A stretch of 64,000 nucleotides of DNA from Trichosphaerium sp. ATCC 40318 (taxonomy: Eukaryota > Protista > Tubulinea). Below the pieces are notes generated by a model. That model did no database searches. It worked only from the letters and a program-made list of their open reading frames with translations, and was not told the DNA's origin. The DNA lies in the NCBI GenBank assembly GCA_038496445.1, contig JALMLS010000179.1, forward strand, positions 124,001-188,000, written 5' to 3'. Of this stretch, positions 4,957 through 31,455 are shown piece by piece (the stretch's first letter is position 1; every line of letters begins with the position of its first letter). The translations under genes and the position numbers were made by a program.

Positions 4957-5202
4957 ACTGGGAGGCACATGGTTAAACAATCAGTCAAGGATGTGAATGG
5001 ATGCGGAGACTATGTAAGAGGCGTCAGGTTTTTATGCCAGGGGGCTTTTCCTGAGAAGGAGGTTTTCGGTTGTTTCCTCCTTATTTCACTACTTTCTTTT
5101 ATTTTTTATTTTTATTTTGTGAGTTTTGGCTCTAGTAGCCGTGTCGGGTGGTTTGGCGCTTTTCTCATAGCGGCGTTTTCTGCGCCCTGAAAGTCAACCC
5201 GT

Positions 5203-5411
5203 GGGCCAGCACAGTTTTTGCACAAAGCTTACAATTTGTCAAAATTGTAGAAATTGCAGAAATTGTTAATTCAGTGGTGAGAAAAGGTATTGCCAGTGCT
5301 GCCAATTTATTTTCTACCTTGTAATTTTAGGTATTTTCGCAATTTCTCTAATTTTAGGCAATTCGGCAAATTGTACAAATTGTACAAATTACACAAAAAC
5401 TGTGCTGCCCC
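5203..5411. mobile_element. MITE-like element of about 200 bp with terminal inverted repeats
   Basis: CAGCACAGTTTTTG (5207-5220) and its exact reverse complement CAAAAACTGTGCTG (5394-5407), flanked by GGG/CCC. The interior is non-coding with repeated AAATTG units. No clear TSD. Confidence 0.55.
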
Positions 5412-5545
5412 AGACAATAAACAATAACAAACAAACAAACAATAAATAGTGTTATTCAGGTCAAATCCGAGCTAGCAAGCACAGAAAAAATATGACGATT
5501 ATGACTATCAAAAATAGTCAGATTCTCTTGTTGTGAGTACATCTC

Positions 5546-8500
5546 ATGGGAAATGTACATACCAACTAGCACGTTAACGCTAATTACTGTGTAATAGTCG
5601 CACCACAAGCCTAATGCGAGTAAGAAATACCAGTTTGTACGCATGGAAGGTATTGTTACTCCTGAAATGCAAAAAACTCTTCTAAACGGTACGTTGATGC
5701 GATTTATTGTTATATTCAAGGTTAATAAGCCCCACGTAATATTCAACGCTTGAATGGCTTAAACTATTTATAAAAGGCATCTCTTACACTGCAAAAAGCT
5801 ACCCAAAAACGAAAAAAGTGGCTAACAAGACTTCTAACTACAAAAAATTATTTGTACGGGATTTTACCCAAAAGCGTATCCCAGAGTCCTTTAAGGACGT
5901 AATAAGCCCTATTTCATGGGAAGCGCATCAACAAGAACGTACGCTACCAGTTCAGGAGTCAAAAACGGTTTCAATGAATAAATATCAGATTAACTGTGCT
6001 TAAAAAAAACCGGTCTTTGCTTCCTTTTGATGCCTCTTTAGGAGCTATACCTAAAAATTATAATGCTATATGTACTACTTGTTATAGCTATGGTGATGGA
6101 GGTAAGCTTGGTGGTCATGTAGACTTTATACAGTGCGTACACAATCAAGTTTGTTACATTATTTTTTTGTAAAATTGTACTTTACTTGGAGGCCAGTAGT
6201 TCTTGCTTCCTTTTTTTTAATTGACTCTTCTGTGTTTTTTAGAGGATGGATTATGGTTATTTCGTTGGGTCGTAGTGCCGAGTTTTGGTACAAAGAGCCA
6301 GGTTGTGAGAAAGTCAGTAAGTGATGATTGATGAACACTCTTTTGGTTTTTTTTGGGTTTCGGCCTTCCTTTACACTTGTCTAACAATATCTTTAAGCGT
6401 TTACTGTAAAAAGTGGTGATGCTGTTATGTTCAATGGAAGTGCTGCTTGTGGTATTAAGCATGGTACATAGAAAGAAGACAAAGATATCTTTTTTTTGTT
6501 CAACTTTCTCTTTAGGTGTTTCATCAATCGGACCCAAGGATACATACCCAGATTACCTACCAGAGGAATTTTCATCTAAGAGGATTAGCTTACAATTTCG
6601 TAATGGCCCTAACAACGAAACCCCCGAACCGTCAGATGATGATGAGTGGTTTTATGACTTTCATTCGACTCGTGTTTGGAACATTTCAGCTGAGAGATTT
6701 GAAGCTGATAGTGAGTATACTTTACTCTTTTTTTTTCAAAGAATACTATATTCTAATCACGTGGTTTTAGTTTCTCCATCACATGATATCTCATTAGCAC
6801 TAGAACAATGTCATTTTTCAAAACTGGCACCAGAAATTTTGGAGTATTTTTGGGAGTATTCTTCGCTTACTTCTCTTCATTCTTGTGCTGCTACTTGTCA
6901 TAAATTAAGACATTCCATGTACGCTTTGAGATACTTGCCAAAGTGATTGTGTAATGGATTGTAGTTTGAGTATCAAGGAGTATGTTAAAGTCAGTGATAA
7001 GTTCTATCACTGCTTTCAAACGCTAGACTATTTGAGGTATCAGCCATGGACAGCATTTAAAGGGTAAGTTTTAGTGGCTTTATAGATTAATTTCTAACAC
7101 AATATAGGTGTGATTTAAAAGACAAGTGTGTAACAGTAGACATTGGGACAAACCAAGTGAGGTAAAGTTGTTTTTGAACCAAGGGAAAATCAGTTTATTT
7201 TATCATTGTTGCTAACTTGGCTTTGAAGGTTTGGTATGAACTTAAAGGATCAAAATAAACCTCCAAGGATAGTTACAATACCTTGTTTGGTTGGTAAGGA
7301 CCCTGAGACATCGGAAATTTACTATGGAGACAATGTAATCCTTAGGTAAGATAACTTCTTTGTTTGGTATCATCTAATATCTTTTCAAGAAGAAAAGAAC
7401 TTGAACTGTCAAGACCAGTTGTGAGTTGTGTGATAGAAGATTGGGATGCTATAACCCATCTATTAAAACAAGGGTTTCTCAAGCTAGGGATTATCACTGT
7501 TGATTGTGCAATAATGGTATCACTGCCTGATATGTCTTCGTGCGTGCTTTAATAAGCTCTGGTTTTTGTTACTAATTCATATCAGCAAGGAATCGCGATG
7601 TCGCATATGTGAAATCCTGTTTGATGAGTTCCAAGCTTTATCTATGTATGTAGCTAATTCCTCCTTATTGTCGTTAATAAAGTGTGGTACGTAATGCATG
7701 TTTATTGAAGTGTCTTAAAAGCTTTGTTTTTTTTTTCATTTGTTTTGGTTGCTTGGACAACCCTTTCAGCTAATGTAATTTGTCTTTAGAGGAGTCGACA
7801 GGGTTTATCACACATATAGGGGCCGATTTTAGTTACTCAGTATTAATTTATGAAGGGCGTCCGGAAAGAAAACCACTTGTCTATCCTGTTGGAGGAAATC
7901 ATATCTTTGATAAGTTTCTGTCTTTCCTCGACGAGGGAGATAAGGTATAAGTCATTCTTATGAACTTAGCTGTATTTTAATACTGTATAGGCAATAGTTG
8001 AAGAAGATCGGTTCATGCTTGAGCCTTGGTTCTTTGAAAACAAGTTTTCTGTTTCTCCTGAACCAAAAACAAGTGTTAACAAAAGTGTAAAGTCAACAGT
8101 TTCTCTTCCAAATGGAAAGAGTATAAGTGTTCCTGAAGGAGCTTTCGAAGCATGTTTTGATGTTTTATTTGAAGATGGAGAGTTTGCAAAGGTACATATT
8201 ACATTATGGTAGTTATAGCCATTGTTAACTAGATTTACTTAGATAGTCATAAAAAGTGGGCAACCGGTAATGTATGATCAAAACCATTTCAATCACTTTG
8301 TAGTAGGTGCGTTGTCTTTACCTTTAATGTAATAGTATTATGTTATCTAATGGAGATAATAAGGAGCTACTGCGGGTGTTGATGGAATGAAAGTAAGACT
8401 TGAAAGAGAAGTTGAAGCAGCTGGTAAAAAGGTGTGTTTTCTGCGGTTTTTTTTGTTGGAGCTAATGCAGTTTTAGATTAAAACTGTAGGATACGATACT

Positions 8501-8750
8501 AAGTCGAATTTATGGAATCTGGAAGGAGGAATAATGTTATCTTCTTTATCTACTTTTCAAAAAATGTGGTATGTCACAAATCTAAAATGAAAGACTTTCG
8601 TATTTTTTTCTTATTTTTTATTCCTTGACCCGACTTTATATTACATATTGCGTTGTGCGCACTTTGTTAATCTATTAATGTTTGTGTAGGGTATTTATAG
8701 AAGAATATAAAGACAGTGGACCAAAAATAGTAAACAGAAAATGTTTCTAA
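5546..8750 (+). CDS. Tri-domain protein: AlkB-like 2OG-Fe(II) dioxygenase + F-box + actin-related (ARP) domain, about 19 exons
   Basis: Spliced product: MGN|SHHK...YSYGDGGKLGGHVD...MVISLGRSAEF...VKSGDAVMFNG...HGV...RISLQFR (AlkB HxD/H/R motifs); LAPEILEYFWEYSSLTSLHSCAATCHKLR (F-box); VTVDIGTNQVRFG, IEDWD, EILFDEF, VLIYEG, GGIMLSSLSTFQKMW|VFIEEYKDSGPKIVNRKCF* (actin fold). All junctions are phase-consistent. Confidence 0.85.
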
Positions 8751-10958
8751 AAGCATTACTAGTAAACGGATCATCATTCGTTGTGTTGTTGTTGCTTGGC
8801 ACGCTGTCACTTGGGCTAGTGGTACTTGGTGCATCACCGCTTGGCTCATTGTCAGATGGCACATTAGTGCTTGGCACAGTGTCAGTTGGTACAGTATCAC
8901 TAGGCACAATGTTCTCCAATTCAAGAAAAGGACCCCAATATCCTCCATTTTCTATGGCCTTTTCACAAGCTTTAGGATCAGCTTCCTCGTAAGTTACTAT
9001 AAAAACATCCTGTGCTAGTTCCATAGATCGAGACATCATGCTTGTATGAATATCGGGTAGAGCTTGAGATAAGTCTTGGTGTTCTGTTGGGTCATCAAAG
9101 ATATTGTAAAGACAACCGTCTCTACAGGTTTGAGAGTCTTCTCTTTCGAGGTATTTCTCAGTGGCATTAGGGTATTGAGGTCCTGTCCAGCCTTTTATGT
9201 GTTAGAAGTTACAGTTGAGGGTTGTTGTTTAACAACAAAGCAAGATTTTGACTACATACCTGCGTAAGGCATATTTCCTAGAACGATTTTGTACTCTCCT
9301 GATATTAGGTTCACATGAGTAGGAGATCCTCCACCTCCAATAGTAACACTTGACAGCGGTATTTCTCCACGTGGGGAAGTAGTTGTTTCGCCTGAAATCA
9401 AACTAAAGGAAACTATGGGTAAAGTGTTTTCGTCTTCATGATTTTAATTTGGGTGTTCACGTACGGCCACATGTTAATACTGTCCACTGGAGGTAGACCC
9501 TCCTCGTTACCCTCGTGATCTATTGGATCAGCACCGCTTAGGTAGCAGAATGTAGCATACCAATCGCAAACGTGAATCAATCCTTCTTGTGTTGTTCCTC
9601 TCATTGTGTCGGGTAAAAATCCTCCTGAAACAATAGCTGTTGCTCTTATACCACCTTCCCAGTCGCTTCCTTTTGATCCTTTTAGAGGATAGTTATTACC
9701 TCCTCCGTCTGTTGTACTACCCCATGGTTCTTGCTGAGTTGGACTGTAGTTGTAAGATAAATAACAAGAGATTCATTCAACAACATACCCTCCGTTGTCA
9801 GCAGCGAAAATAAATACAGTGTTATCCCACAACCCATTATCTTTCAGAGCATCCGTTATGTTTCCAACGGATTCATCAAGGAATGTTACCATTCCTTGGT
9901 AGTACTTCCGTCTGTCATTATCAGGAGGGTTTGGATATCTATCAATGTATTCTTGAGGAACTTGAAGAGGTGCTAGAATAGTAGTAAGAACAAGTCACCA
10001 CAATTGAAAGCGTTACCATGAGGATTTTGTAGTGCAACATACATAAATAACGGGTCGTTGGGGTCATGGGCCTTTATAGTATCTATGGCAGCATTTGCAA
10101 ACGTGTACTCACTGTAAGTTCCGTTTAAACCGTAAGCAGGCTTATCAGTCTTAAGACGTTTGTTAAACAATGATGTGACATAGTATAAAGTACCTCCCAA
10201 AAGTCTACAAAGCTATCAGTGCATGCCAGAGATCTGATTTTCTGCGTATAATAATCAATAGCACCACTAAAATATCCAATAGAAGTATCAAAACCTCTTC
10301 CAGTAGGCGTGACGTCAGGGTAAGCCTAGCACACATTTAGAAAAAAAAAGAAAAAAAAACGTTTGGCTTGAACCAAAAATATCACGTGCCATCCCAATGT
10401 GCCACTTCCCTGCGTTTTACGTTATTTACAAGACAGTTGAAAATAAACATATTTAGAAGGTAGTTCAATAAAAGAATAAACTGTTTTCTTCTTACCATAA
10501 AAGTGAGTTGAATAGCCAACATCCTTGAGCTTCCGTGATATCATTGTCATATTCCTTGGTACACCTCCATTTGGAATAGTTATTGCAGTATTCTTTTCAT
10601 TCACGTGTATAGGTAGGCGACCAGACATTAGAGAAGAGCGTGTAGGAGAGCAAACCTGGTACATTACTTAAATTAACAAAATCTCTGTTTATCTTGGCAC
10701 TTGATACCTTATAGGCGTAGTGTCGTGATAATTCGACGCCATTATCTTTTAAGTCATTCAGAGCAGGTGAAATTATTCTCGAGTTGTGATAGCCTACATT
10801 ATACCAACCAAGGTCCTAGCAATTATAATTATAACTTGTAGCTAGCATAAGGGTTGTTTTTGTACATCAGCAAGAACGAGAACAATGTTGGGTTTAGACG
10901 ATTGGCAATAAACAGTGACACTTATTAACAGAACAAACAGGGAGCACAGCAGTTGCAT
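8695..10958 (-). CDS. Arylsulfatase (ARSB-like), secreted, probably GPI- or membrane-anchored
   Basis: Signal peptide MQLLCSLFVLLISVTVYC, then KPNIVLVLAD, CSPTRSSLMSGR (formylglycine motif), GKWHIG, DNGG, PLKGSKGSDWEGGIR. Ends in a Ser/Thr/Pro linker and a hydrophobic C-terminus. Confidence 0.92.
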
Positions 10959-13826: not shown

Positions 13827-14716
13827 TTGTATTATTTTAAGTTACCAATGAAGTAGTTTACACTAACAGTAACGTTATGTTTCTTTGATCGGCAAAAGTC
13901 AGCACAAGTATTTAGTGAAAGAAAAAGAGACACATGAAATTAAGAACAAACATATTTTATAGGCCAAATGTACAAGTCAATGATTGTGAGGGTTGAAGTT
14001 GTATGTAAGAAAATTGAGGTATGTATTTGTTAAGTAACGTGCGCCTCTCAGAGGCTATTTATTCATTATGTCTCCGTCTTCAACCCAGTTTCTTAAATGT
14101 TAAGGTTAGTTTTAACATCTCAATAAACTTTTGTAAACTAAACAATTTTGGCCCTGCAGGTGTTGACCACGGATGTCCTTAATTATGTATAGTTTATACC
14201 AATAAATCAAGTTTGTGTAGTGGAAACAAACAGTCCTAAAGGCGGTCTTCTGTTTTGGATAATATGAGAGGCTCGTAAAACTTTCCTTTCCCGTCATACG
14301 CCTTTCTAGAAAAACAGTGTTAATAACCGAGTTTCTTTAAAGGTATTAATACGAAAGGTTTAGTTTCTCATATTTTTCTTTTATCAATAGCTTTTTTTTT
14401 CTTTGTTAAACGTTAGGTCATACACAACTTGTTAAATTGTCTAAGTGCTTATCATGGCGTGACGACGAACAACAACGCTGTTTAGCACAACTTGTATTAA
14501 TTAGGGTATCAAATATGTGACTGTTAGGGGTAAGGTAACATACGATGATGGAGCTGTAATACATGCTGGAAATGGTAACTTGTTGAACAATAAACGGCCA
14601 AAGAAATAATTCAGTGTCACCTAAAACTAAAGTTACCAGACTGGTTTTGACTTCTTGGCAACAAGGTCACCCACATGTTTCCTCGTAGACGTCAACTCTG
14701 ACTGCCATTGTATGAA

Positions 14717-15640
14717 ATGTCAGTCAACAGCGCAATCATTGGCAACATATTTTCATTGCCTGTTGAGATACTTTTAAACGTTATCGTCTGTAACAACATG
14801 ACATGGCAAGATTTAGCGTCATTACAACAATCAAACTATTTTCTATGCGAATTGATACAAAATGAATCAGATTACATTTATCGACATTTATACCACCGGA
14901 AATGGGGTCGTGACTCTGAAGAAATAGAGTCTGCTATCCACCAAAGCATTACTGTTAATTTAAAAAATCAACATGCAGTAACGCCAACAGTACCAATACC
15001 AACGACTTTATATAATTTCAATGCAGTCACGTGGAAAGAAAAGTATCGAAACAGATTGCGTTCAAATATCATCTCAGAGTTGAGTTGTGACACGAACAAT
15101 GTTCACCAAGGACAGACAGTCACATTCACACTCACACTCGAGAATATTGGTAAAACACCAGAGACAGTCTACCTTGGTTTTGGATCGAGGCTTGCAGAAT
15201 GTCATGTTATTAAAGGTGGTAGTGCAGTATATATTTGGAAGCCTGAAGTCAAGGATCCTAATGCATTTCTCAACAATTATAGGTGCTTTTATAGAACTAC
15301 ACCACGCATGAAACCCCGTCAGGAGTTTAACGTCATAATTAACCCAGGAGATATATGTACATACAAGATTCCATTACATTTTAGAAAGGTGGTATGTAGG
15401 ACACGTTTTCACGCAATGAAGTCACGTTTTCCACATGTTGATACACTTTCTCTCCAAGGCATAATCTCTCAAGTATGTGTTGCTGGCCCTAAAACGCCGG
15501 ATGTATTTCCTCTTCAGGTATTCGTCAAAGTCAATACTTTAAAAGAAAAATATCAAGGGCTTTATATTACTGTTTTTGGACATTGTTCAGTTGTTACAAG
15601 CAATGTTGTTAATCTTACAATGTACAAAACATGTCAATAA
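14717..15640 (+). CDS. Intronless F-box protein with an Ig-like C-terminal region
   Basis: FSLPVEILLNVI...WQDLASLQQSNYFL...IYRHLYHRKW, then WKEKYRNR and VHQGQTVTFTLTLENIG (beta-sandwich pattern). First ATG at 14717. Confidence 0.75.
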   Translation: MSVNSAIIGNIFSLPVEILLNVIVCNNMTWQDLASLQQSNYFLCELIQNESDYIYRHLYHRKWGRDSEEIESAIHQSITVNLKNQHAVTPTVPIPTTLYNFNAVTWKEKYRNRLRSNIISELSCDTNNVHQGQTVTFTLTLENIGKTPETVYLGFGSRLAECHVIKGGSAVYIWKPEVKDPNAFLNNYRCFYRTTPRMKPRQEFNVIINPGDICTYKIPLHFRKVVCRTRFHAMKSRFPHVDTLSLQGIISQVCVAGPKTPDVFPLQVFVKVNTLKEKYQGLYITVFGHCSVVTSNVVNLTMYKTCQ

Positions 15641-24741: not shown

Positions 24742-25473
24742 TTATTGCTTGCTTTGCAAGTTTGGAGAACATATAAACGTGGCACCACCGTTGTAGTTTG
24801 AAATACAATCGGTGGCTTTTGTCGTTGTTCCAAAATCCCCAAAAAGCTTGACTGTCAATGGTGGGTTGGGAAGGGCAGTTATAAGCGGGCAATAAAAGTT
24901 TGAAGGTCCCTGACTTTTGTCACAAATGGTCACGATTTTGGAACCCTTGTACAAGTGCACACTATTAACATTACCCCAACCTGATACATTTTCCATGTGG
25001 AATCCATACCACCACTTGCTAGTGCCAGCCTTGTTCCTGATTATGAAGCCTCCAGGGATGTCGCACTGTACGCGTTCAAACGTGATACCCACCACCCCAC
25101 AAGCTGCAGCCGCTTGTAAAGAGCCTACTACAGCCACTGCAGTGTCCCTATTCAAATCAAAGTGTATCGAAGAGCATTCTGCACATTGATCGATGATTTG
25201 GACTATTTGAGGGCTACCGCCTGCACAAACGCAGAGGGGGCTTATTTTAGAGGGTCCTGCACATGTTATCCTGTAACAACGACCACATCCATAGCCATCG
25301 TCGAATATTGTACTACCAGCTGCTGCGTAGTGACCGTTGATAGGGTGACCAGTGTATGGGCCGTTAGCGCCACAACTGTTTCCAAATGGGTTCCCACCAT
25401 AATATGTGGCTATACCTGACGCTGCGTATGTGCTAGTTATAACCAATGTAAGAAAAACAGTAACCGATTTCAT
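24742..25473 (-). CDS. Expansin-like protein 1 (DPBB + CBM63-like), intronless
   Basis: Signal peptide, ATYYG..CG, AAAG..FDDGYGCGRCYRITC, IDQC.EC...HFDL, FERVQC, TSKWWYG. Confidence 0.92.
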   Translation of the reverse strand: MKSVTVFLTLVITSTYAASGIATYYGGNPFGNSCGANGPYTGHPINGHYAAAGSTIFDDGYGCGRCYRITCAGPSKISPLCVCAGGSPQIVQIIDQCAECSSIHFDLNRDTAVAVVGSLQAAAACGVVGITFERVQCDIPGGFIIRNKAGTSKWWYGFHMENVSGWGNVNSVHLYKGSKIVTICDKSQGPSNFYCPLITALPNPPLTVKLFGDFGTTTKATDCISNYNGGATFICSPNLQSKQ

Positions 25474-26622: not shown

Positions 26623-27342
26623 TTACAAGTTTGGAGAACAAGTAAACGTAGCGCCACCGATGTAGCTTGAAATACAATCGGTGGCTGTTGTCGTTGTTCC
26701 AAAATCCCCAAAAAGCTTGACTGTCAATGGTGGGTTGGGAAGAACCGTTATAAGCGGGCAATAAAAGAATGATGTTCCCTGACTTTTGTCGCACGTGGCA
26801 ACGAGGGTGGAACCCTTGAATAAGTGCACACTATTAACATTACCCCAACCTGATACATTTTCCATGTGGAATCCATACCACCACTTGCTAGTGCCGCCCT
26901 TGTTCCTGATTATGAAGCCTCCAGGGATGTCGCACTGTACGCGTTCGAACGTGATACCTATCACACCACATGCTAAAGCCGCCCTTGGAGAGCCTACTAT
27001 AGCGGCTCCAGTGTCCAAATCCAAATCAAAATGAGTGGAGGAGCATTCTGGGCATTTATCGATGATTTGGACTATTTGAGGACTACCACCTGTACAATCG
27101 CAGAAAGGGTTTATTTGCGAGGGTCCTGTACACTTTATCCTGTAACAACGACCACATCCATAGCCATCGTTGAATATTGTACCACCAGCTGCTGCGTAGT
27201 GACCATTGATAGGGTGACCAGTGTACGGGCCGTTAGCGCCACAACTGTTTCCAAATGGGTTTCCACCATAAAACGTGGCTTGGCCAGACGCTGCGTATGT
27301 GGTCGTTATCACCAATGTAAGAAAAACAACAACCGATTTCAT
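26623..27342 (-). CDS. Expansin-like protein 2, tandem paralogue, intronless
   Basis: Same motifs as 24742..25473 with high identity. About 250 bp of upstream sequence is also homologous. Confidence 0.92.
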   Translation of the reverse strand: MKSVVVFLTLVITTTYAASGQATFYGGNPFGNSCGANGPYTGHPINGHYAAAGGTIFNDGYGCGRCYRIKCTGPSQINPFCDCTGGSPQIVQIIDKCPECSSTHFDLDLDTGAAIVGSPRAALACGVIGITFERVQCDIPGGFIIRNKGGTSKWWYGFHMENVSGWGNVNSVHLFKGSTLVATCDKSQGTSFFYCPLITVLPNPPLTVKLFGDFGTTTTATDCISSYIGGATFTCSPNL

Positions 27343-27752: not shown

Positions 27753-30700
27753 TCAGCTGACTACAGTAAAGTGAATTTCTACAGCTAGTCCAGCATTGCC
27801 AGTCGGCAATTGCCCACCTGAACCGTCATTGTTAAATGGCACCGCACGAAGAACATAGTCTCCTGGTGTAATATTCCACATATTTGGATCTGTACCACTT
27901 CTTCCAGCAATAAAGTAACCAGCATCATTTTCAATTTTCTCTACAGCACCACCAAGGTAGAATACAACAGAGTCAACACTCGCTAATTACGTGTAAGTAC
28001 AAACTCTATACTTTCCAAGTTTTTTCCGGAAAAAATTGCGTACGCGTCACAAGTGCTTCAATTGATACTTCGGGATTAACACTGAGGTCAATCACTGCAC
28101 CATCGCATATTGGACCAAGGTCTGTGTTGCTGTCAGTATCCCATAGACGTAAACCAGTCACTGCAAAGCTTTGGTTGCCAACAAGTGTAATTGGAATGGT
28201 TACAGGGAACTTCTCATCTCCTGTCGCGTCTGAACCTGTGAATGGTGTCGCTACTATTGTCACACATTGAGGGTGTGCAAACGCTTGGCATCCACTTGAA
28301 GGACTAATTGCTGATACCGGGAAGCTATAAGGAGCACTATTGTCGATACTAAAGTACCAGTAAGCATCAACGAATAACAACAACAACATTGTAGTTTAGC
28401 TCGTTTTTGAACAGACGTACACTTCAAATGTTGGGAAAGGCCCAGATATTGTAAACTTAACAGAACTAACAGTGCCAATCGTTTGAGCAACTATCTGGTC
28501 ACCTTCACGCAGTGGGTCTGCTCTCAAGTCAATTTCATTACCAGATGACAAAATGTCATCAAGCGTGTTTCCGTCCTTATCTACCAGAGACAGTCTTGTA
28601 GTTGCTGCACAATTGTCGAAAATATCATCATCTGGTGCCGCAGCCATGAAAGGTGTACCAGCCAAGTTGTATCCTGGAAAATGTGTGCGTACTAAGCCCT
28701 CAAGGGTCACTGTTTTGATTTGATCAACTTCCGCTTGAGATAGAGGAAGCTCTCCAAGAAGTGTTGATACACCCAAATTAGGTTGATTTTCGAACCAGAA
28801 TCGGTCACCATCACGTGATCTTCTATATTGATCAAGTATTACACGTGCTGCAGTACGTCCAAGATTAGATCCAGGGGCTTTTTTTTCACTCATAAAACCC
28901 ATCCAAGCATCGATGTGGATAAGTTTTTGATATGCCTGTATATAAGGTTAATTTTCAACAATTAGGACCAGTTTTGTGTACACTTCTTGTTTCGTCTGCA
29001 AGACTATCGTTTGATATCCATGTGTCCCAACATCCTAGACTGTCAAGTCCAGGAGATGAAGGGCTTGAAGAACATCCGTTGCGACTGTACAAACGACCAG
29101 GTTCAGGCATTAGACCATTCCAACTGTCGTAAACAGTATTGAAGTCTGGTACACCCTCGTGACGTGCACGTTGCATATTAAGTGTCAAGACATCTAATAA
29201 AATGATTAATTTGCTAATAGTTGGCTGTCAAAAACGTACCTTGGCCAATAAGTACCGGTCCAAAATTGATATTTCTCAAAGTGTTATGTACAAGGTGGTC
29301 GAATTCTTCGAGTTGAGTGTACGACATTGTTCTAGCAACATCAGTGTGTCCACCTGCGCCCATAATCTAAACAAAGTTAAGGTATTTTTTAATAATAAGT
29401 AGGAGCGTACAGCACGAAGAGGAAAGACTGTACGAAGACCAATAATGCCGTTGAATCCTTTTTTTAAATCCTTGTTTCTGCAATCATCGAACAGCGAGAT
29501 ACTATCAAACACGGTAGAGTGACCGTATCTTCCAGCAGCAAATGAGAAAAGTGGTGACATGCGTCCATCTACGCCAGACTTATAACCGTTCCACCTTCTA
29601 CAACACAGGGTCAACAGCACATATGAAGAAAAAAAGCATACCCTAAATATCGAGCTATTTGCAAGTCTCCCATTAACAGAGGCAAGTACTCATTGTATAC
29701 AATATGTTGATATTGTGCAGTGTTGATAATTCTAGCCTTTTGGAATAGCTGCTCATCATTCCACTGTGGATGCTAACGAAAGGTTAGATTAAAAGGAAGA
29801 AGTAAAGTAATGTTAAACTACGAACCTGCGCTTTTAGATTCTTTGCTATCCTGTTATGTTCTTGATGAAACATGGTATGTATAGTAAGCAATCCCATATT
29901 TTCACCTGCTCGTCTATCTCCAGATACCAATATAACGTCATCGGGTTCATTAAAGGCATCTGATGGAGTATCTAGAAGAGATGTAAACCAACACTGTATG
30001 GTAAAGACTCAATACCAAAAAAACAATCGTACTAATTTGAGACTTTAGAGGAAGTACACCTAATAGTTTTCTCGTTTCAGGATCTGAAGTCAGGTCGCTT
30101 AAATCGTTGGGATTCCATGTGGAGGTATACTTATGATCAGAGAGGAGCAAGAGCCCATCAGAAACTATGTTCAGAAAATTTTAGATAAGGAGCACGTGTA
30201 CATTTAACTGAGATGTTAAAAAAAAATGCGTAATCAATACACGCGAGTATTGGAGTACGCGTTGATTTGGTTTTTACGTACAGGTGCGCTGCTTGTTGAG
30301 GAATTCAATATCATTCCAGTAAATATTAGACATATCCATCCAGTGGGTTTGCATATTCAGAGGTTGTCTCACGCCATTACTATCATTAGTGGCCACGGTG
30401 ACGCCAGTACGAAGAAACTTTCCAATGAATGGAAGGATGGTTTTAGGTTGCCCAACTAATAAAGTTCTTAGCTTTGGAAGGACACGAAACATTTCTGATT
30501 TCTAAGAAACGTGGCCTTCTTCACAGGCGTACAAAAGAATAGAAGTGGATCGTCATCGGCCACAGGGATCAGTATGTTATTAACTGGATCTGGTGGCCCA
30601 GCAGGGTTGGTAGGAAGGGACTCTGTCTACGACAAAAAGTAGGTCAAAGTGAACTATAAATTATTGGGATAAAATCTGAGAAAAGAACTTCTGTTGTACT

Positions 30701-31101
30701 CTCTGATTTTCTAAACTTCCAGACTTTTTCGTATAAATTAAAGGACGTACCAACGCCATGTCGTGAGAGATAAACTGACCGAAGAAGGTATGAAAGAGCG
30801 ATAGTCCTTTAGCAGTCTTTGCGCTTTTTGGAGTCGTTTCAATGGTGGACAAGCGATTTGACGCTTCTCTTGTTGTAATTGGTGATACACGCGGTGTATC
30901 AAAGCCATTCTCGTAAAAAGCTCCCTCCTTCGTCCTGTAGTACGGCGTGTGTGGTGTACCACGATCAACATCAGCTTGGTGATTACAACTGCCGTCAAAA
31001 GTGCGTATGGTATCAGTCTCAGGACCACATGTAGTTTGGGATGCTACTAGCAGTGCTAGGCACGTGAATATTACATAATGACACGTGAGAAATGTTGCCA
31101 T
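27753..31101 (-). CDS. Secreted haem peroxidase (peroxidase-cyclooxygenase family) with two C-terminal beta-sandwich repeats
   Basis: Signal peptide, RTFDGSCN, FFGQFISHD (distal His), THWMDMSNIY, GDRRAGEN, EHNRIA, AAGRYGHS (proximal His), NMQRARHEG, RDGDRFWFEN. Confidence 0.92.
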
Positions 31102-31455
31102 CTTGCGTGGCAGGTGTAATCTATCTGTTTTGGTTTGTGCGGTGTTCACCACAAATAATTTAGCCGCTAGCGATTTTTGGGATGTTCCACGCGTAGCACG
31201 ATACTCATTGTAGAACTACGCATAAGAAAGCTCTATTTGTGCACCAAAACGTCTTCAATGAATAAACTTTTGAGATTGTGGTGCTTTATTGTATGAGTAA
31301 CAGCTACAGTAACTACTTTGAACTCAAGTTCACAACAACATGGAAATGCGTCAACATTTACACTGGTAATGTTTCAGTGATTACAACCTTTAATTTATGT
31401 AAACGCAAGATTTGGGATTTTCTATTTATCACGTGGCTTTTCCTAGGTTTTATCG

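Follow-up and report, generated by a model that had tools for sequence, protein, structure and literature searches.

A candidate gene combining an AlkB-type dioxygenase, an F-box-like segment and an actin fold in Trichosphaerium sp.

Can a dioxygenase, an F-box and an actin fold be carried by a single polypeptide? The question is raised by a locus of the protist Trichosphaerium sp. ATCC 40318 (Tubulinea), found at positions 5546-8750 on the plus strand of the window, i.e. the whole 64,000-nt stretch analysed here (assembly GCA_038496445.1, contig JALMLS010000179.1, positions 124,001 to 188,000). A preliminary description, based on the nucleotide sequence, had proposed one gene fusing the three domains. 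On balance, the evidence leans towards one plus-strand gene and one 665-aa protein, in which an AlkB-type Fe(II)/2-oxoglutarate (2OG) dioxygenase is followed by an F-box-like segment and a C-terminal actin fold. RNA shows the AlkB-like exons spliced to one another and on to the F-box exon, and the whole exon chain keeps its phase. The decisive point is a putative 46-nt intron that links the F-box-like segment to the actin part.

Exon structure and RNA support

The exon chain, rebuilt from the three forward reading frames with GT..AG introns, gives a 19-exon model (5546-8750, plus strand) that encodes 665 residues with no internal stop and keeps its phase throughout. Introns measure 43-121 nt, with 10 of 18 at 43-52 nt; the short ones are mostly of 44-46 nt and 46 nt is the commonest length. 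Donors are of the types GTAAGT, GTACGT or GTGCGT, and in most introns a TAAY/CTAAY motif lies 8-15 nt 5' of the AG. The features are as follows.

5546..5554, plus strand: putative exon 1 (ATG GGA AAT, MGN); GTACAT donor behind it, then a 43-nt intron whose branch-like motif is CTAAT
5598..5688, plus strand: exon 2, N-terminal strand of the AlkB-like domain (KYQFVRMEGIV...), supported by phase and by hhalign pairing with the AlkB N-terminus; alternative start at ATG 5643
5777..5938, plus strand: exon 3, AlkB-like N-terminal region; final 52 nt within a spliced RNA contig, joined to exon 4
6042..6132, plus strand: exon 4, CYSYGDGGKLGGHVD, with the Fe(II)-binding HxD at 6116-6124; RNA joints at both ends; ungapped with E. 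coli AlkB L118-D133
6243..6316, plus strand: exon 5, IMVISLGRSAEF, SLG strand; RNA joints, one contig near-identical; paired with AlkB VSVSLGLPA
6398..6463, plus strand: exon 6, SGDAVMF...IKHG, distal His; RNA joints (two contigs); paired with AlkB HGDVVVW...YHG
6516..6710, plus strand: exon 7, RISLQFR (2OG-binding Arg pair) and an acidic linker; RNA joints; RISLQFR paired with AlkB RYNLTFR
6771..6918, plus strand: exon 8, F-box-like segment (FSKLAPEILEYFWEYSSLTSLHSCAATCHKLRHS); RNA joint to exon 7 in a contig with ~93% identity to the window
6919..6964, plus strand: putative linking intron, 46 nt (GTACGC..TAAT..TGTAG), holding an in-frame TGA at 6944-6946; outside RNA coverage
6965..7063, plus strand: exon 9, linker (LSIKEYVKVSDKFYHCFQTLDYLRYQPWTAFKG); open frame 6930-7064, with ATG 6954 included only if extended upstream
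7108..7161, plus strand: exon 10, phosphate-1 loop (VTVDIGTNQVR); phase, motif by eye
7229..7345, plus strand: exon 11, subdomain 2 with shortened DNase I-binding loop (D-loop); phase; no match in the PDB search
7390..7539, plus strand: exon 12, actin residues ~62-112 (IEDWD...); Pfam Actin, Arp2 match in PDB
7586..7686, plus strand: exon 13, actin residues 113-145, Ser at the Q137 position; Pfam Actin, actin chains in PDB
7790..7944, plus strand: exon 14, phosphate-2 region (ITHIGAD), His at the D154 position, IYEG; ESM-Atlas Actin
7991..8191, plus strand: exon 15, subdomain 4 / LPNGKSISV...; phase
8243..8306, plus strand: exon 16, shortened plug / subdomain 3; phase
8364..8431, plus strand: exon 17, adenosine loop (VVGGATAG); phase, motif by eye
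8477..8568, plus strand: exon 18, IKTVG...GGIMLSSLSTFQKMW; phase
8690..8750, plus strand: exon 19, VFIEEYKDSGPKIVNRKCF and TAA; end of the Pfam Actin profile; overlaps the last open reading frame (ORF) of a convergent sulfatase gene

Only a single public RNA run contained words of the locus (share 0.06), and its contigs were placed on 5400-8900. Spliced contigs confirm five introns, namely 5939-6041, 6133-6242, 6317-6397 and 6464-6515 (these last two each in two contigs) and 6711-6770. One contig is nearly identical to the window; two, on exons 3-8 (5885-6894), are ~92-93% identical and represent an expressed sister strain, allele or close paralogue. Only the ~93% copy shows the 6711-6770 joint, by which the F-box exon is tied to the last exon of the AlkB part. 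Nine of the 17 codon differences between the window and the ~92-93% identical expressed copy are synonymous, which suggests purifying selection. As to transcripts starting or ending between 6600 and 7100, which the preliminary description had named as a sign of two genes, spliced RNA crosses 6711-6770 in the ~93% copy and coverage is absent over 6921-7388. The coordinates first given for exon 4 (6042-6132) and for the last exon (8690-8750) hold, the latter from the model and outside RNA coverage.

A further joint, 7539→7869, connects the exon 12 donor to an AG within exon 14 and has a shorter side of 27 nt. It would keep the frame while removing the Q137/phosphate-2 region, and may belong to a paralogue; this weak joint shows at most that RNA of the actin part exists.

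Exons 1 and 2 lie outside the RNA contigs, and exon 1 is required only if exon 2 codes upstream of ATG 5643. The 9-nt first exon had been read as providing a possible myristoylation site. Gly2 is present, but residue 6 of MGNSHHK is His, and the N-myristoylation pattern (PROSITE PS00008) needs S, T, A, G, C or N at that residue. An MGN start is possible, but the case for an N-myristoylated terminus is weak.

Identity of the three domains

The AlkB-like part (residues ~13-206) is collinear with bacterial AlkB across every catalytic motif. The spliced N-terminus was compared as query with E. coli alkB and with 77 bacterial AlkB genes from GTDB genomes (58-94% identity). Its Smith-Waterman score against E. 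coli AlkB is 49, a value reached by 1 of 500 shuffles; with a hidden Markov model (HMM) of the 77 bacterial AlkBs, the real sequence ranks 8 of 3001 (3000 shuffles); and hhalign yields P 0.002 over 174 columns, pairing Y122, K127, H131xD133, SLG, GD, H187-G and R204x5R210, all of them collinear. These are three related tests, with P ~0.002. In all three alignments CYSYGDGGKLGGHVD faces INRYAPGAKLSLHQD, ISLG faces VSLG, SGDAVMF faces HGDVVVW, KHGV faces YHGI and RISLQFR faces RYNLTFR. The HxD...H iron triad is present, since in the pairwise, HMM and hhalign comparisons H112-V-D114 and H163 pair with AlkB H131, D133 and H187, and so is the RxxxxxR pair for 2OG binding, RISLQFR being aligned with RYNLTFR by hhalign. 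Collectively, this collinear pairing indicates an intact iron triad and intact arginines for 2OG binding, and a probably active enzyme. The full AlkB catalytic set claimed for the spliced N-terminus is borne out, with HVD at 6116-6124, and RISLQFR and the F-box-like stretch do lie in a single frame (ORF 6413-6946).

The protein differs from E. coli AlkB in several respects. Identity is ~24% over aligned columns, the residue facing N120 is Tyr, 37 residues separate the distal His from the Arg pair vs 17 in E. coli AlkB, and the nucleotide-recognition lid of the bacterial enzyme is not recognisably conserved. A narrow HMM, built from E. coli AlkB relatives that are all at least 77% identical, does not detect the domain. 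Profile similarity to AlkB, of modest strength, appears with the broader 77-member profile and with hhalign and is missing with the enterobacterial HMM and in Pfam searches of single exons. The assignment as AlkB-type follows from motifs and from weak profile evidence of modest statistics.

In exon 8, the pattern KLAPEILEYFWEY..LTSL..C..TCHKLR (LxPEIL...CxKL) can be read in the sequence. The F-box consensus has the spacing LPxEIL ... L..L..VCK.W over ~45 residues, and the exon 8 spacing LxPEIL ... L..L..C..TCHKLR appears to fit it. An ESM-Atlas feature search of exon 8 returns F-box or F-box-like families for ~90 of the 100 best named matches (top score 0.90, recognition 2527), whereas exon 7, searched as a control, returns scattered unrelated families (recognition 1845). 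We consider exon 8 likely to hold a true F-box, as proposed at the outset; the motif pattern and the ESM-Atlas families speak for that proposal, and the Pfam search, which gives no F-box match at E≤5, does not.

Other F-box-like segments occur in the window. A single-exon 310-aa ORF on the plus strand (14708-15640) begins with a weak Pfam F-box-like match (E 0.051), continues with weak Ig-like/DUF11-type matches and is a second candidate F-box protein. An ORF on the minus strand (1547-1762) has an F-box-like motif by eye (LPMMNVLSYLRANEVGNFALTCKEY). BLASTP of the exon 8 segment against two other F-box-like segments of the window finds nothing.

Within the actin part (exons 10-19), the fold is recognised in four separate exons (12, 13, 14 and 19). 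Pfam was run on 20 exon pieces and gave weak Actin matches only; Actin is the best or only match for exons 12, 13 and 19, whose positions on the profile run collinearly. Exon 12 matches profile positions 55-86 (E 0.013) and, in the PDB, Arp2 63-111 (E 0.05); exon 13 matches profile positions 107-136 (E 0.014) and dozens of PDB actin chains at 114-143; exon 19 matches positions 395-410 of the 410. Individually these matches stay below the gathering score, because the pieces are only 20-57 aa long. Exon 14 has no match in Pfam or PDB, and in ESM-Atlas 74 of its 100 named matches are Actin, the remainder being MreB/FtsA (top score 0.91, 172 shared features). PDB searches with phmmer on exons 4, 11, 14, 15 and 18 give nothing or spurious leucine-rich repeat (LRR), WD and CTCF matches, those of exon 15 being only repetitive LRR designs.

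Residues that define conventional actin are replaced. The PDB mapping of exon 13 to actin 114-143 places Ser at the Q137 position, and its ungapped extension over the exon 13/14 junction to the conserved IYEG places His at D154 and Tyr at H161; the Ser noticed earlier at the Q137 equivalent is confirmed by the mapping, and the His in place of the phosphate-2 Asp follows from its extension. With Ser, His and Tyr at Q137, D154 and H161, the domain departs from conventional actin at all three positions. The D-loop is ~8 residues shorter and the plug region ~10 shorter; these counts agree with the shortening noticed earlier and come from our own residue counts, not from a tool alignment. In actin numbering, His occupies the K84 position and Ser the H73 position, and IKTVG...GGIMLSSLSTFQKMW of exon 18 is close to the actin motif IKIIAP...GGSILASLSTFQQMW. 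The C-terminus (SLSTFQKMW ... EYKDSGPKIVNRKCF, then stop) is almost that of conventional actin. These features suggest an actin-derived fold that retains actin's general architecture and resembles that of actin-related proteins (ARPs). Given the loss of Q137, D154 and H161 and the shortened D-loop and plug, it is predicted to be unlikely to hydrolyse ATP or to polymerise.

One polypeptide or two, and competing explanations

Whether the actin fold belongs to the same polypeptide depends on removal of 6919-6964. If this stretch is kept, the frame ends at TGA 6944-6946 after 288 aa, and ATG 6954 could open a 390-aa actin-only ORF; with only 7 nt between the TGA and this ATG, a 3' end and a separate promoter would have no space. 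Among donors and acceptors that score at least equally, 6919-6964 is the sole in-frame GT..AG pair. Its 46-nt length is that of three other introns of the gene, its GTACGCT donor is identical to the RNA-confirmed donor at 5939, and a TAAT lies 12 nt before the AG. Exon 9 must be real, given the strong GTAAGT donor at its end and the textbook 44-nt intron behind it. Two other ways of joining the parts were rejected: a 22-nt intron (6943-6964) is too short, and skipping of exon 9 (6919 or 6943 to 7108), though in frame, would leave the strong 7064 donor unused. A single ORF covering the AlkB-like, F-box-like and actin parts is, in our estimation, fairly probable as the main product. The three-domain architecture put forward in the preliminary description is thus the most parsimonious reading, given the RNA joint between AlkB and F-box exons and the in-phase actin exons, with phase kept through all 19 exons up to KIVNRKCF and the stop at 8750.

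Several results weigh against a three-domain protein. RNA coverage, from the contigs of the one run, is zero over 6921-7388, so that the link from F-box to actin is uncovered. The position weight matrix scores of 6919-6964 are 1.6 bits for the donor and -0.2 bits for the acceptor, values matched or beaten by 20% of the GT and 36% of the AG sites in the window. Of the leave-one-out coding scores, that of exon 9 alone is negative (-0.10 bits/codon vs 0.13-0.67 for the other exons). Concerning the domains themselves, Pfam finds no F-box or F-box-like family at E≤5 in 6773-6943, and a single-sequence AlphaFold2 model of the 57-aa F-box piece shows three helices with a predicted local distance difference test (pLDDT) score of 65 and has no Foldseek match. 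The statistics of the AlkB comparison are modest and its exons, searched singly, have no Pfam match, being too short for Pfam and PDB searches.

These observations can be read in other ways. Retention of intron 6919-6964 would yield two products, the 288-aa AlkB-like/F-box-like protein and a 390-aa actin-related protein from ATG 6954. The latter would arise via an internal promoter, reinitiation or an alternative isoform, and the fusion would be no more than apparent, or only one of two isoforms. This explanation, which we hold to be possible but rather unlikely, draws on the closure of ORF 6413-6946 at a TGA with an in-frame ATG behind it, on the average splice signals, on the RNA gap over the link and on exon 9 having the lowest coding score; it has to face a 7-nt interval too small for a 3' end plus promoter and an in-frame 46-nt intron that fits the commonest length in the gene. 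Moreover, an F-box with nothing C-terminal is atypical, and in the plant precedent the F-box lies N-terminal to actin (PMC7562919). A different reduction concerns the middle segment, which could be a plain helical linker, the actin fold then serving as a targeting domain for the tethered AlkB-type enzyme without any connection to ubiquitylation (e.g. ALKBH4-like and aimed at actin-binding partners). The absence of Pfam, structural and BLASTP similarity speaks for this, and ALKBH4 works on actin without any F-box (PMC3674258). The idea nevertheless appears improbable in view of the ESM-Atlas features, overwhelmingly of F-box families in exon 8 and not in the control exon. The LxPEIL ... L..L..C..TCHKLR spacing, which fits the consensus, also speaks for an F-box.

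Finally, the locus could be decaying or chimeric, exon shuffling or transposon capture having put an AlkB-like module beside an F-box-actin gene, so that it is transcribed and makes no functional three-domain protein. An inverted repeat resembling a miniature inverted-repeat transposable element (MITE) just upstream, the catalytic residues lost from the actin fold and the lack of any homologue of the AlkB-C/F-box part in an exhaustive search are compatible with such an origin. Yet all 19 exons are open and in phase, every AlkB catalytic motif is intact, the RNA is spliced, synonymous changes are in excess relative to the ~92% identical copy and the canonical actin C-terminus is kept, making decay very unlikely.

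If the three-domain protein is made, a mechanism can be proposed. Removal of intron 6919-6964 would make the actin fold part of the same polypeptide, and the F-box-like three-helix segment would bind Skp1. The protein may then act as a receptor of the SCF (Skp1-cullin-F-box) type or as a Skp1-tethered enzyme, with the actin fold as a partner-binding module; the dioxygenase could oxidise or demethylate the bound partner (or Skp1), or be regulated through Skp1. An SCF adaptor of this kind is plausible by analogy, because plant SUSA2/ARP8 binds ASK1 (PMC7562919) and JcdI is an O2-dependent dioxygenase as well as an F-box protein (PMC9485057). It is tempting to go further and to propose lineage-specific protist SCF receptors in which a 2OG oxygenase, here AlkB-type, is built into an F-box-actin module, ubiquitylation being gated within a single polypeptide by O2/2OG-dependent oxidation, either of a partner that the actin fold holds or of Skp1 kept next to the enzyme by the F-box. 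This is a long shot; if true, the protein would serve as a metabolic or oxygen sensor complete in itself, and as an AlkB enzyme whose target is protein.

Known relatives, genomic surroundings and significance

An exhaustive phmmer search of the AlkB-C/F-box part (6515-6943) against 1.84 billion cluster representatives gives no match at E≤0.001, meaning that public protein sets contain neither a detectable relative of this part nor the locus. Within the 64 kb, tblastn of the model finds no paralogue. A literature search found no described AlkB - F-box - actin protein, in agreement with the preliminary description, which knew of none with all three domains.

Pairs of these domains are combined elsewhere. 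In animal KDM2A/B (FBXL11/10), the order is dioxygenase - F-box - C-terminal repeat domain. In Dictyostelium and other protists, JcdI/Fbxo13 combines a JmjC dioxygenase, whose dependence on O2 is physiological, with an F-box through which it binds Skp1, and in its system Skp1 itself is prolyl-hydroxylated by PhyA (PMC9485057). JcdI and KDM2A/B resemble the Trichosphaerium model in uniting an Fe(II)/2OG dioxygenase with an F-box in a single protein; they differ in that their enzymes are of the JmjC type, not the AlkB type, and that none has an actin fold. The F-box of JcdI is N-terminal to the enzyme, whereas the F-box-like segment of Trichosphaerium is C-terminal to it. Dioxygenase-F-box proteins are known only with JmjC enzymes.

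The F-box-actin half recalls plant ARP8/SUSA2 (At5g56180), in which a single polypeptide carries an F-box and, C-terminal to it, a divergent actin domain. In SUSA2, which binds ASK1 (Skp1), the actin domain is proposed as a substrate-recognition module and the nucleotide-binding residues are dispensable for function; the protein is reported to be single-copy and restricted to the plant lineage (PMC7562919). In the spliced Trichosphaerium model, where the joining intron lies outside RNA coverage, the F-box-like segment would likewise stand directly N-terminal to actin. ARP8 has no dioxygenase domain, in contrast to the protist gene, which moreover seems to be one of a multi-copy family, and the Trichosphaerium fusion is likely independent of plant ARP8 in origin. 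Concerning the AlkB-actin pair, ALKBH4 (and C. elegans NMAD-1) is an AlkB-family dioxygenase tied to actin, and demethylates actin K84me1 (PMC3674258, PMC10278977). The resemblance is that ALKBH4 is an AlkB-family enzyme functionally linked with actin, but it is a separate protein acting on conventional actin, whereas in the Trichosphaerium model the actin fold is fused to the enzyme. Since the Trichosphaerium fold has His at the K84 position, it is not itself a substrate of the ALKBH4 type. ALKBH4 is, as far as we know, the one established AlkB-actin link, and there the proteins are separate.

Directly upstream of the putative start, an inverted repeat with 63-nt arms (5202-5264 and 5350-5412; 71% complementary, 85 nt apart) accompanied by short tandem repeats looks MITE-like. 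Downstream, a convergent sulfatase gene occupies 8695-10664 on the minus strand, with its signature CSPTRSSLMSGR in ORF 10422-10664; its last ORF (8695-9039) has a hydrophobic tail and overlaps the last actin exon by 56 nt on the opposite strand. Farther away on the minus strand are a tandem pair of secreted expansin-like genes (24742-25473 and 26623-27342; DPBB, PF03330) and exon-sized ORFs (28396-31152) that resemble, by eye, an animal-type haem peroxidase (FGQFISHDM motif). For the expansin-like gene at 24742-25473, the only public relative found is an MMETSP transcript, with 98% identity, which places the genome in a marine microbial eukaryote. Rfam gives nothing on the 64-kb window.

The locus is best filed as a new combination of known domain kinds, not as a new kind of system, and would represent only two adjacent lineage-specific genes if the link is unspliced. 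F-box-actin proteins have been regarded as confined to plants; a three-domain polypeptide, if real, would show that such receptors also arose outside the plant lineage. With enzyme and actin fold naturally tethered, it would allow the effect of an AlkB enzyme on proteins near actin folds to be studied, and it would add to the oxygen-sensitive SCF regulation of protists represented by PhyA/Skp1 and JcdI.

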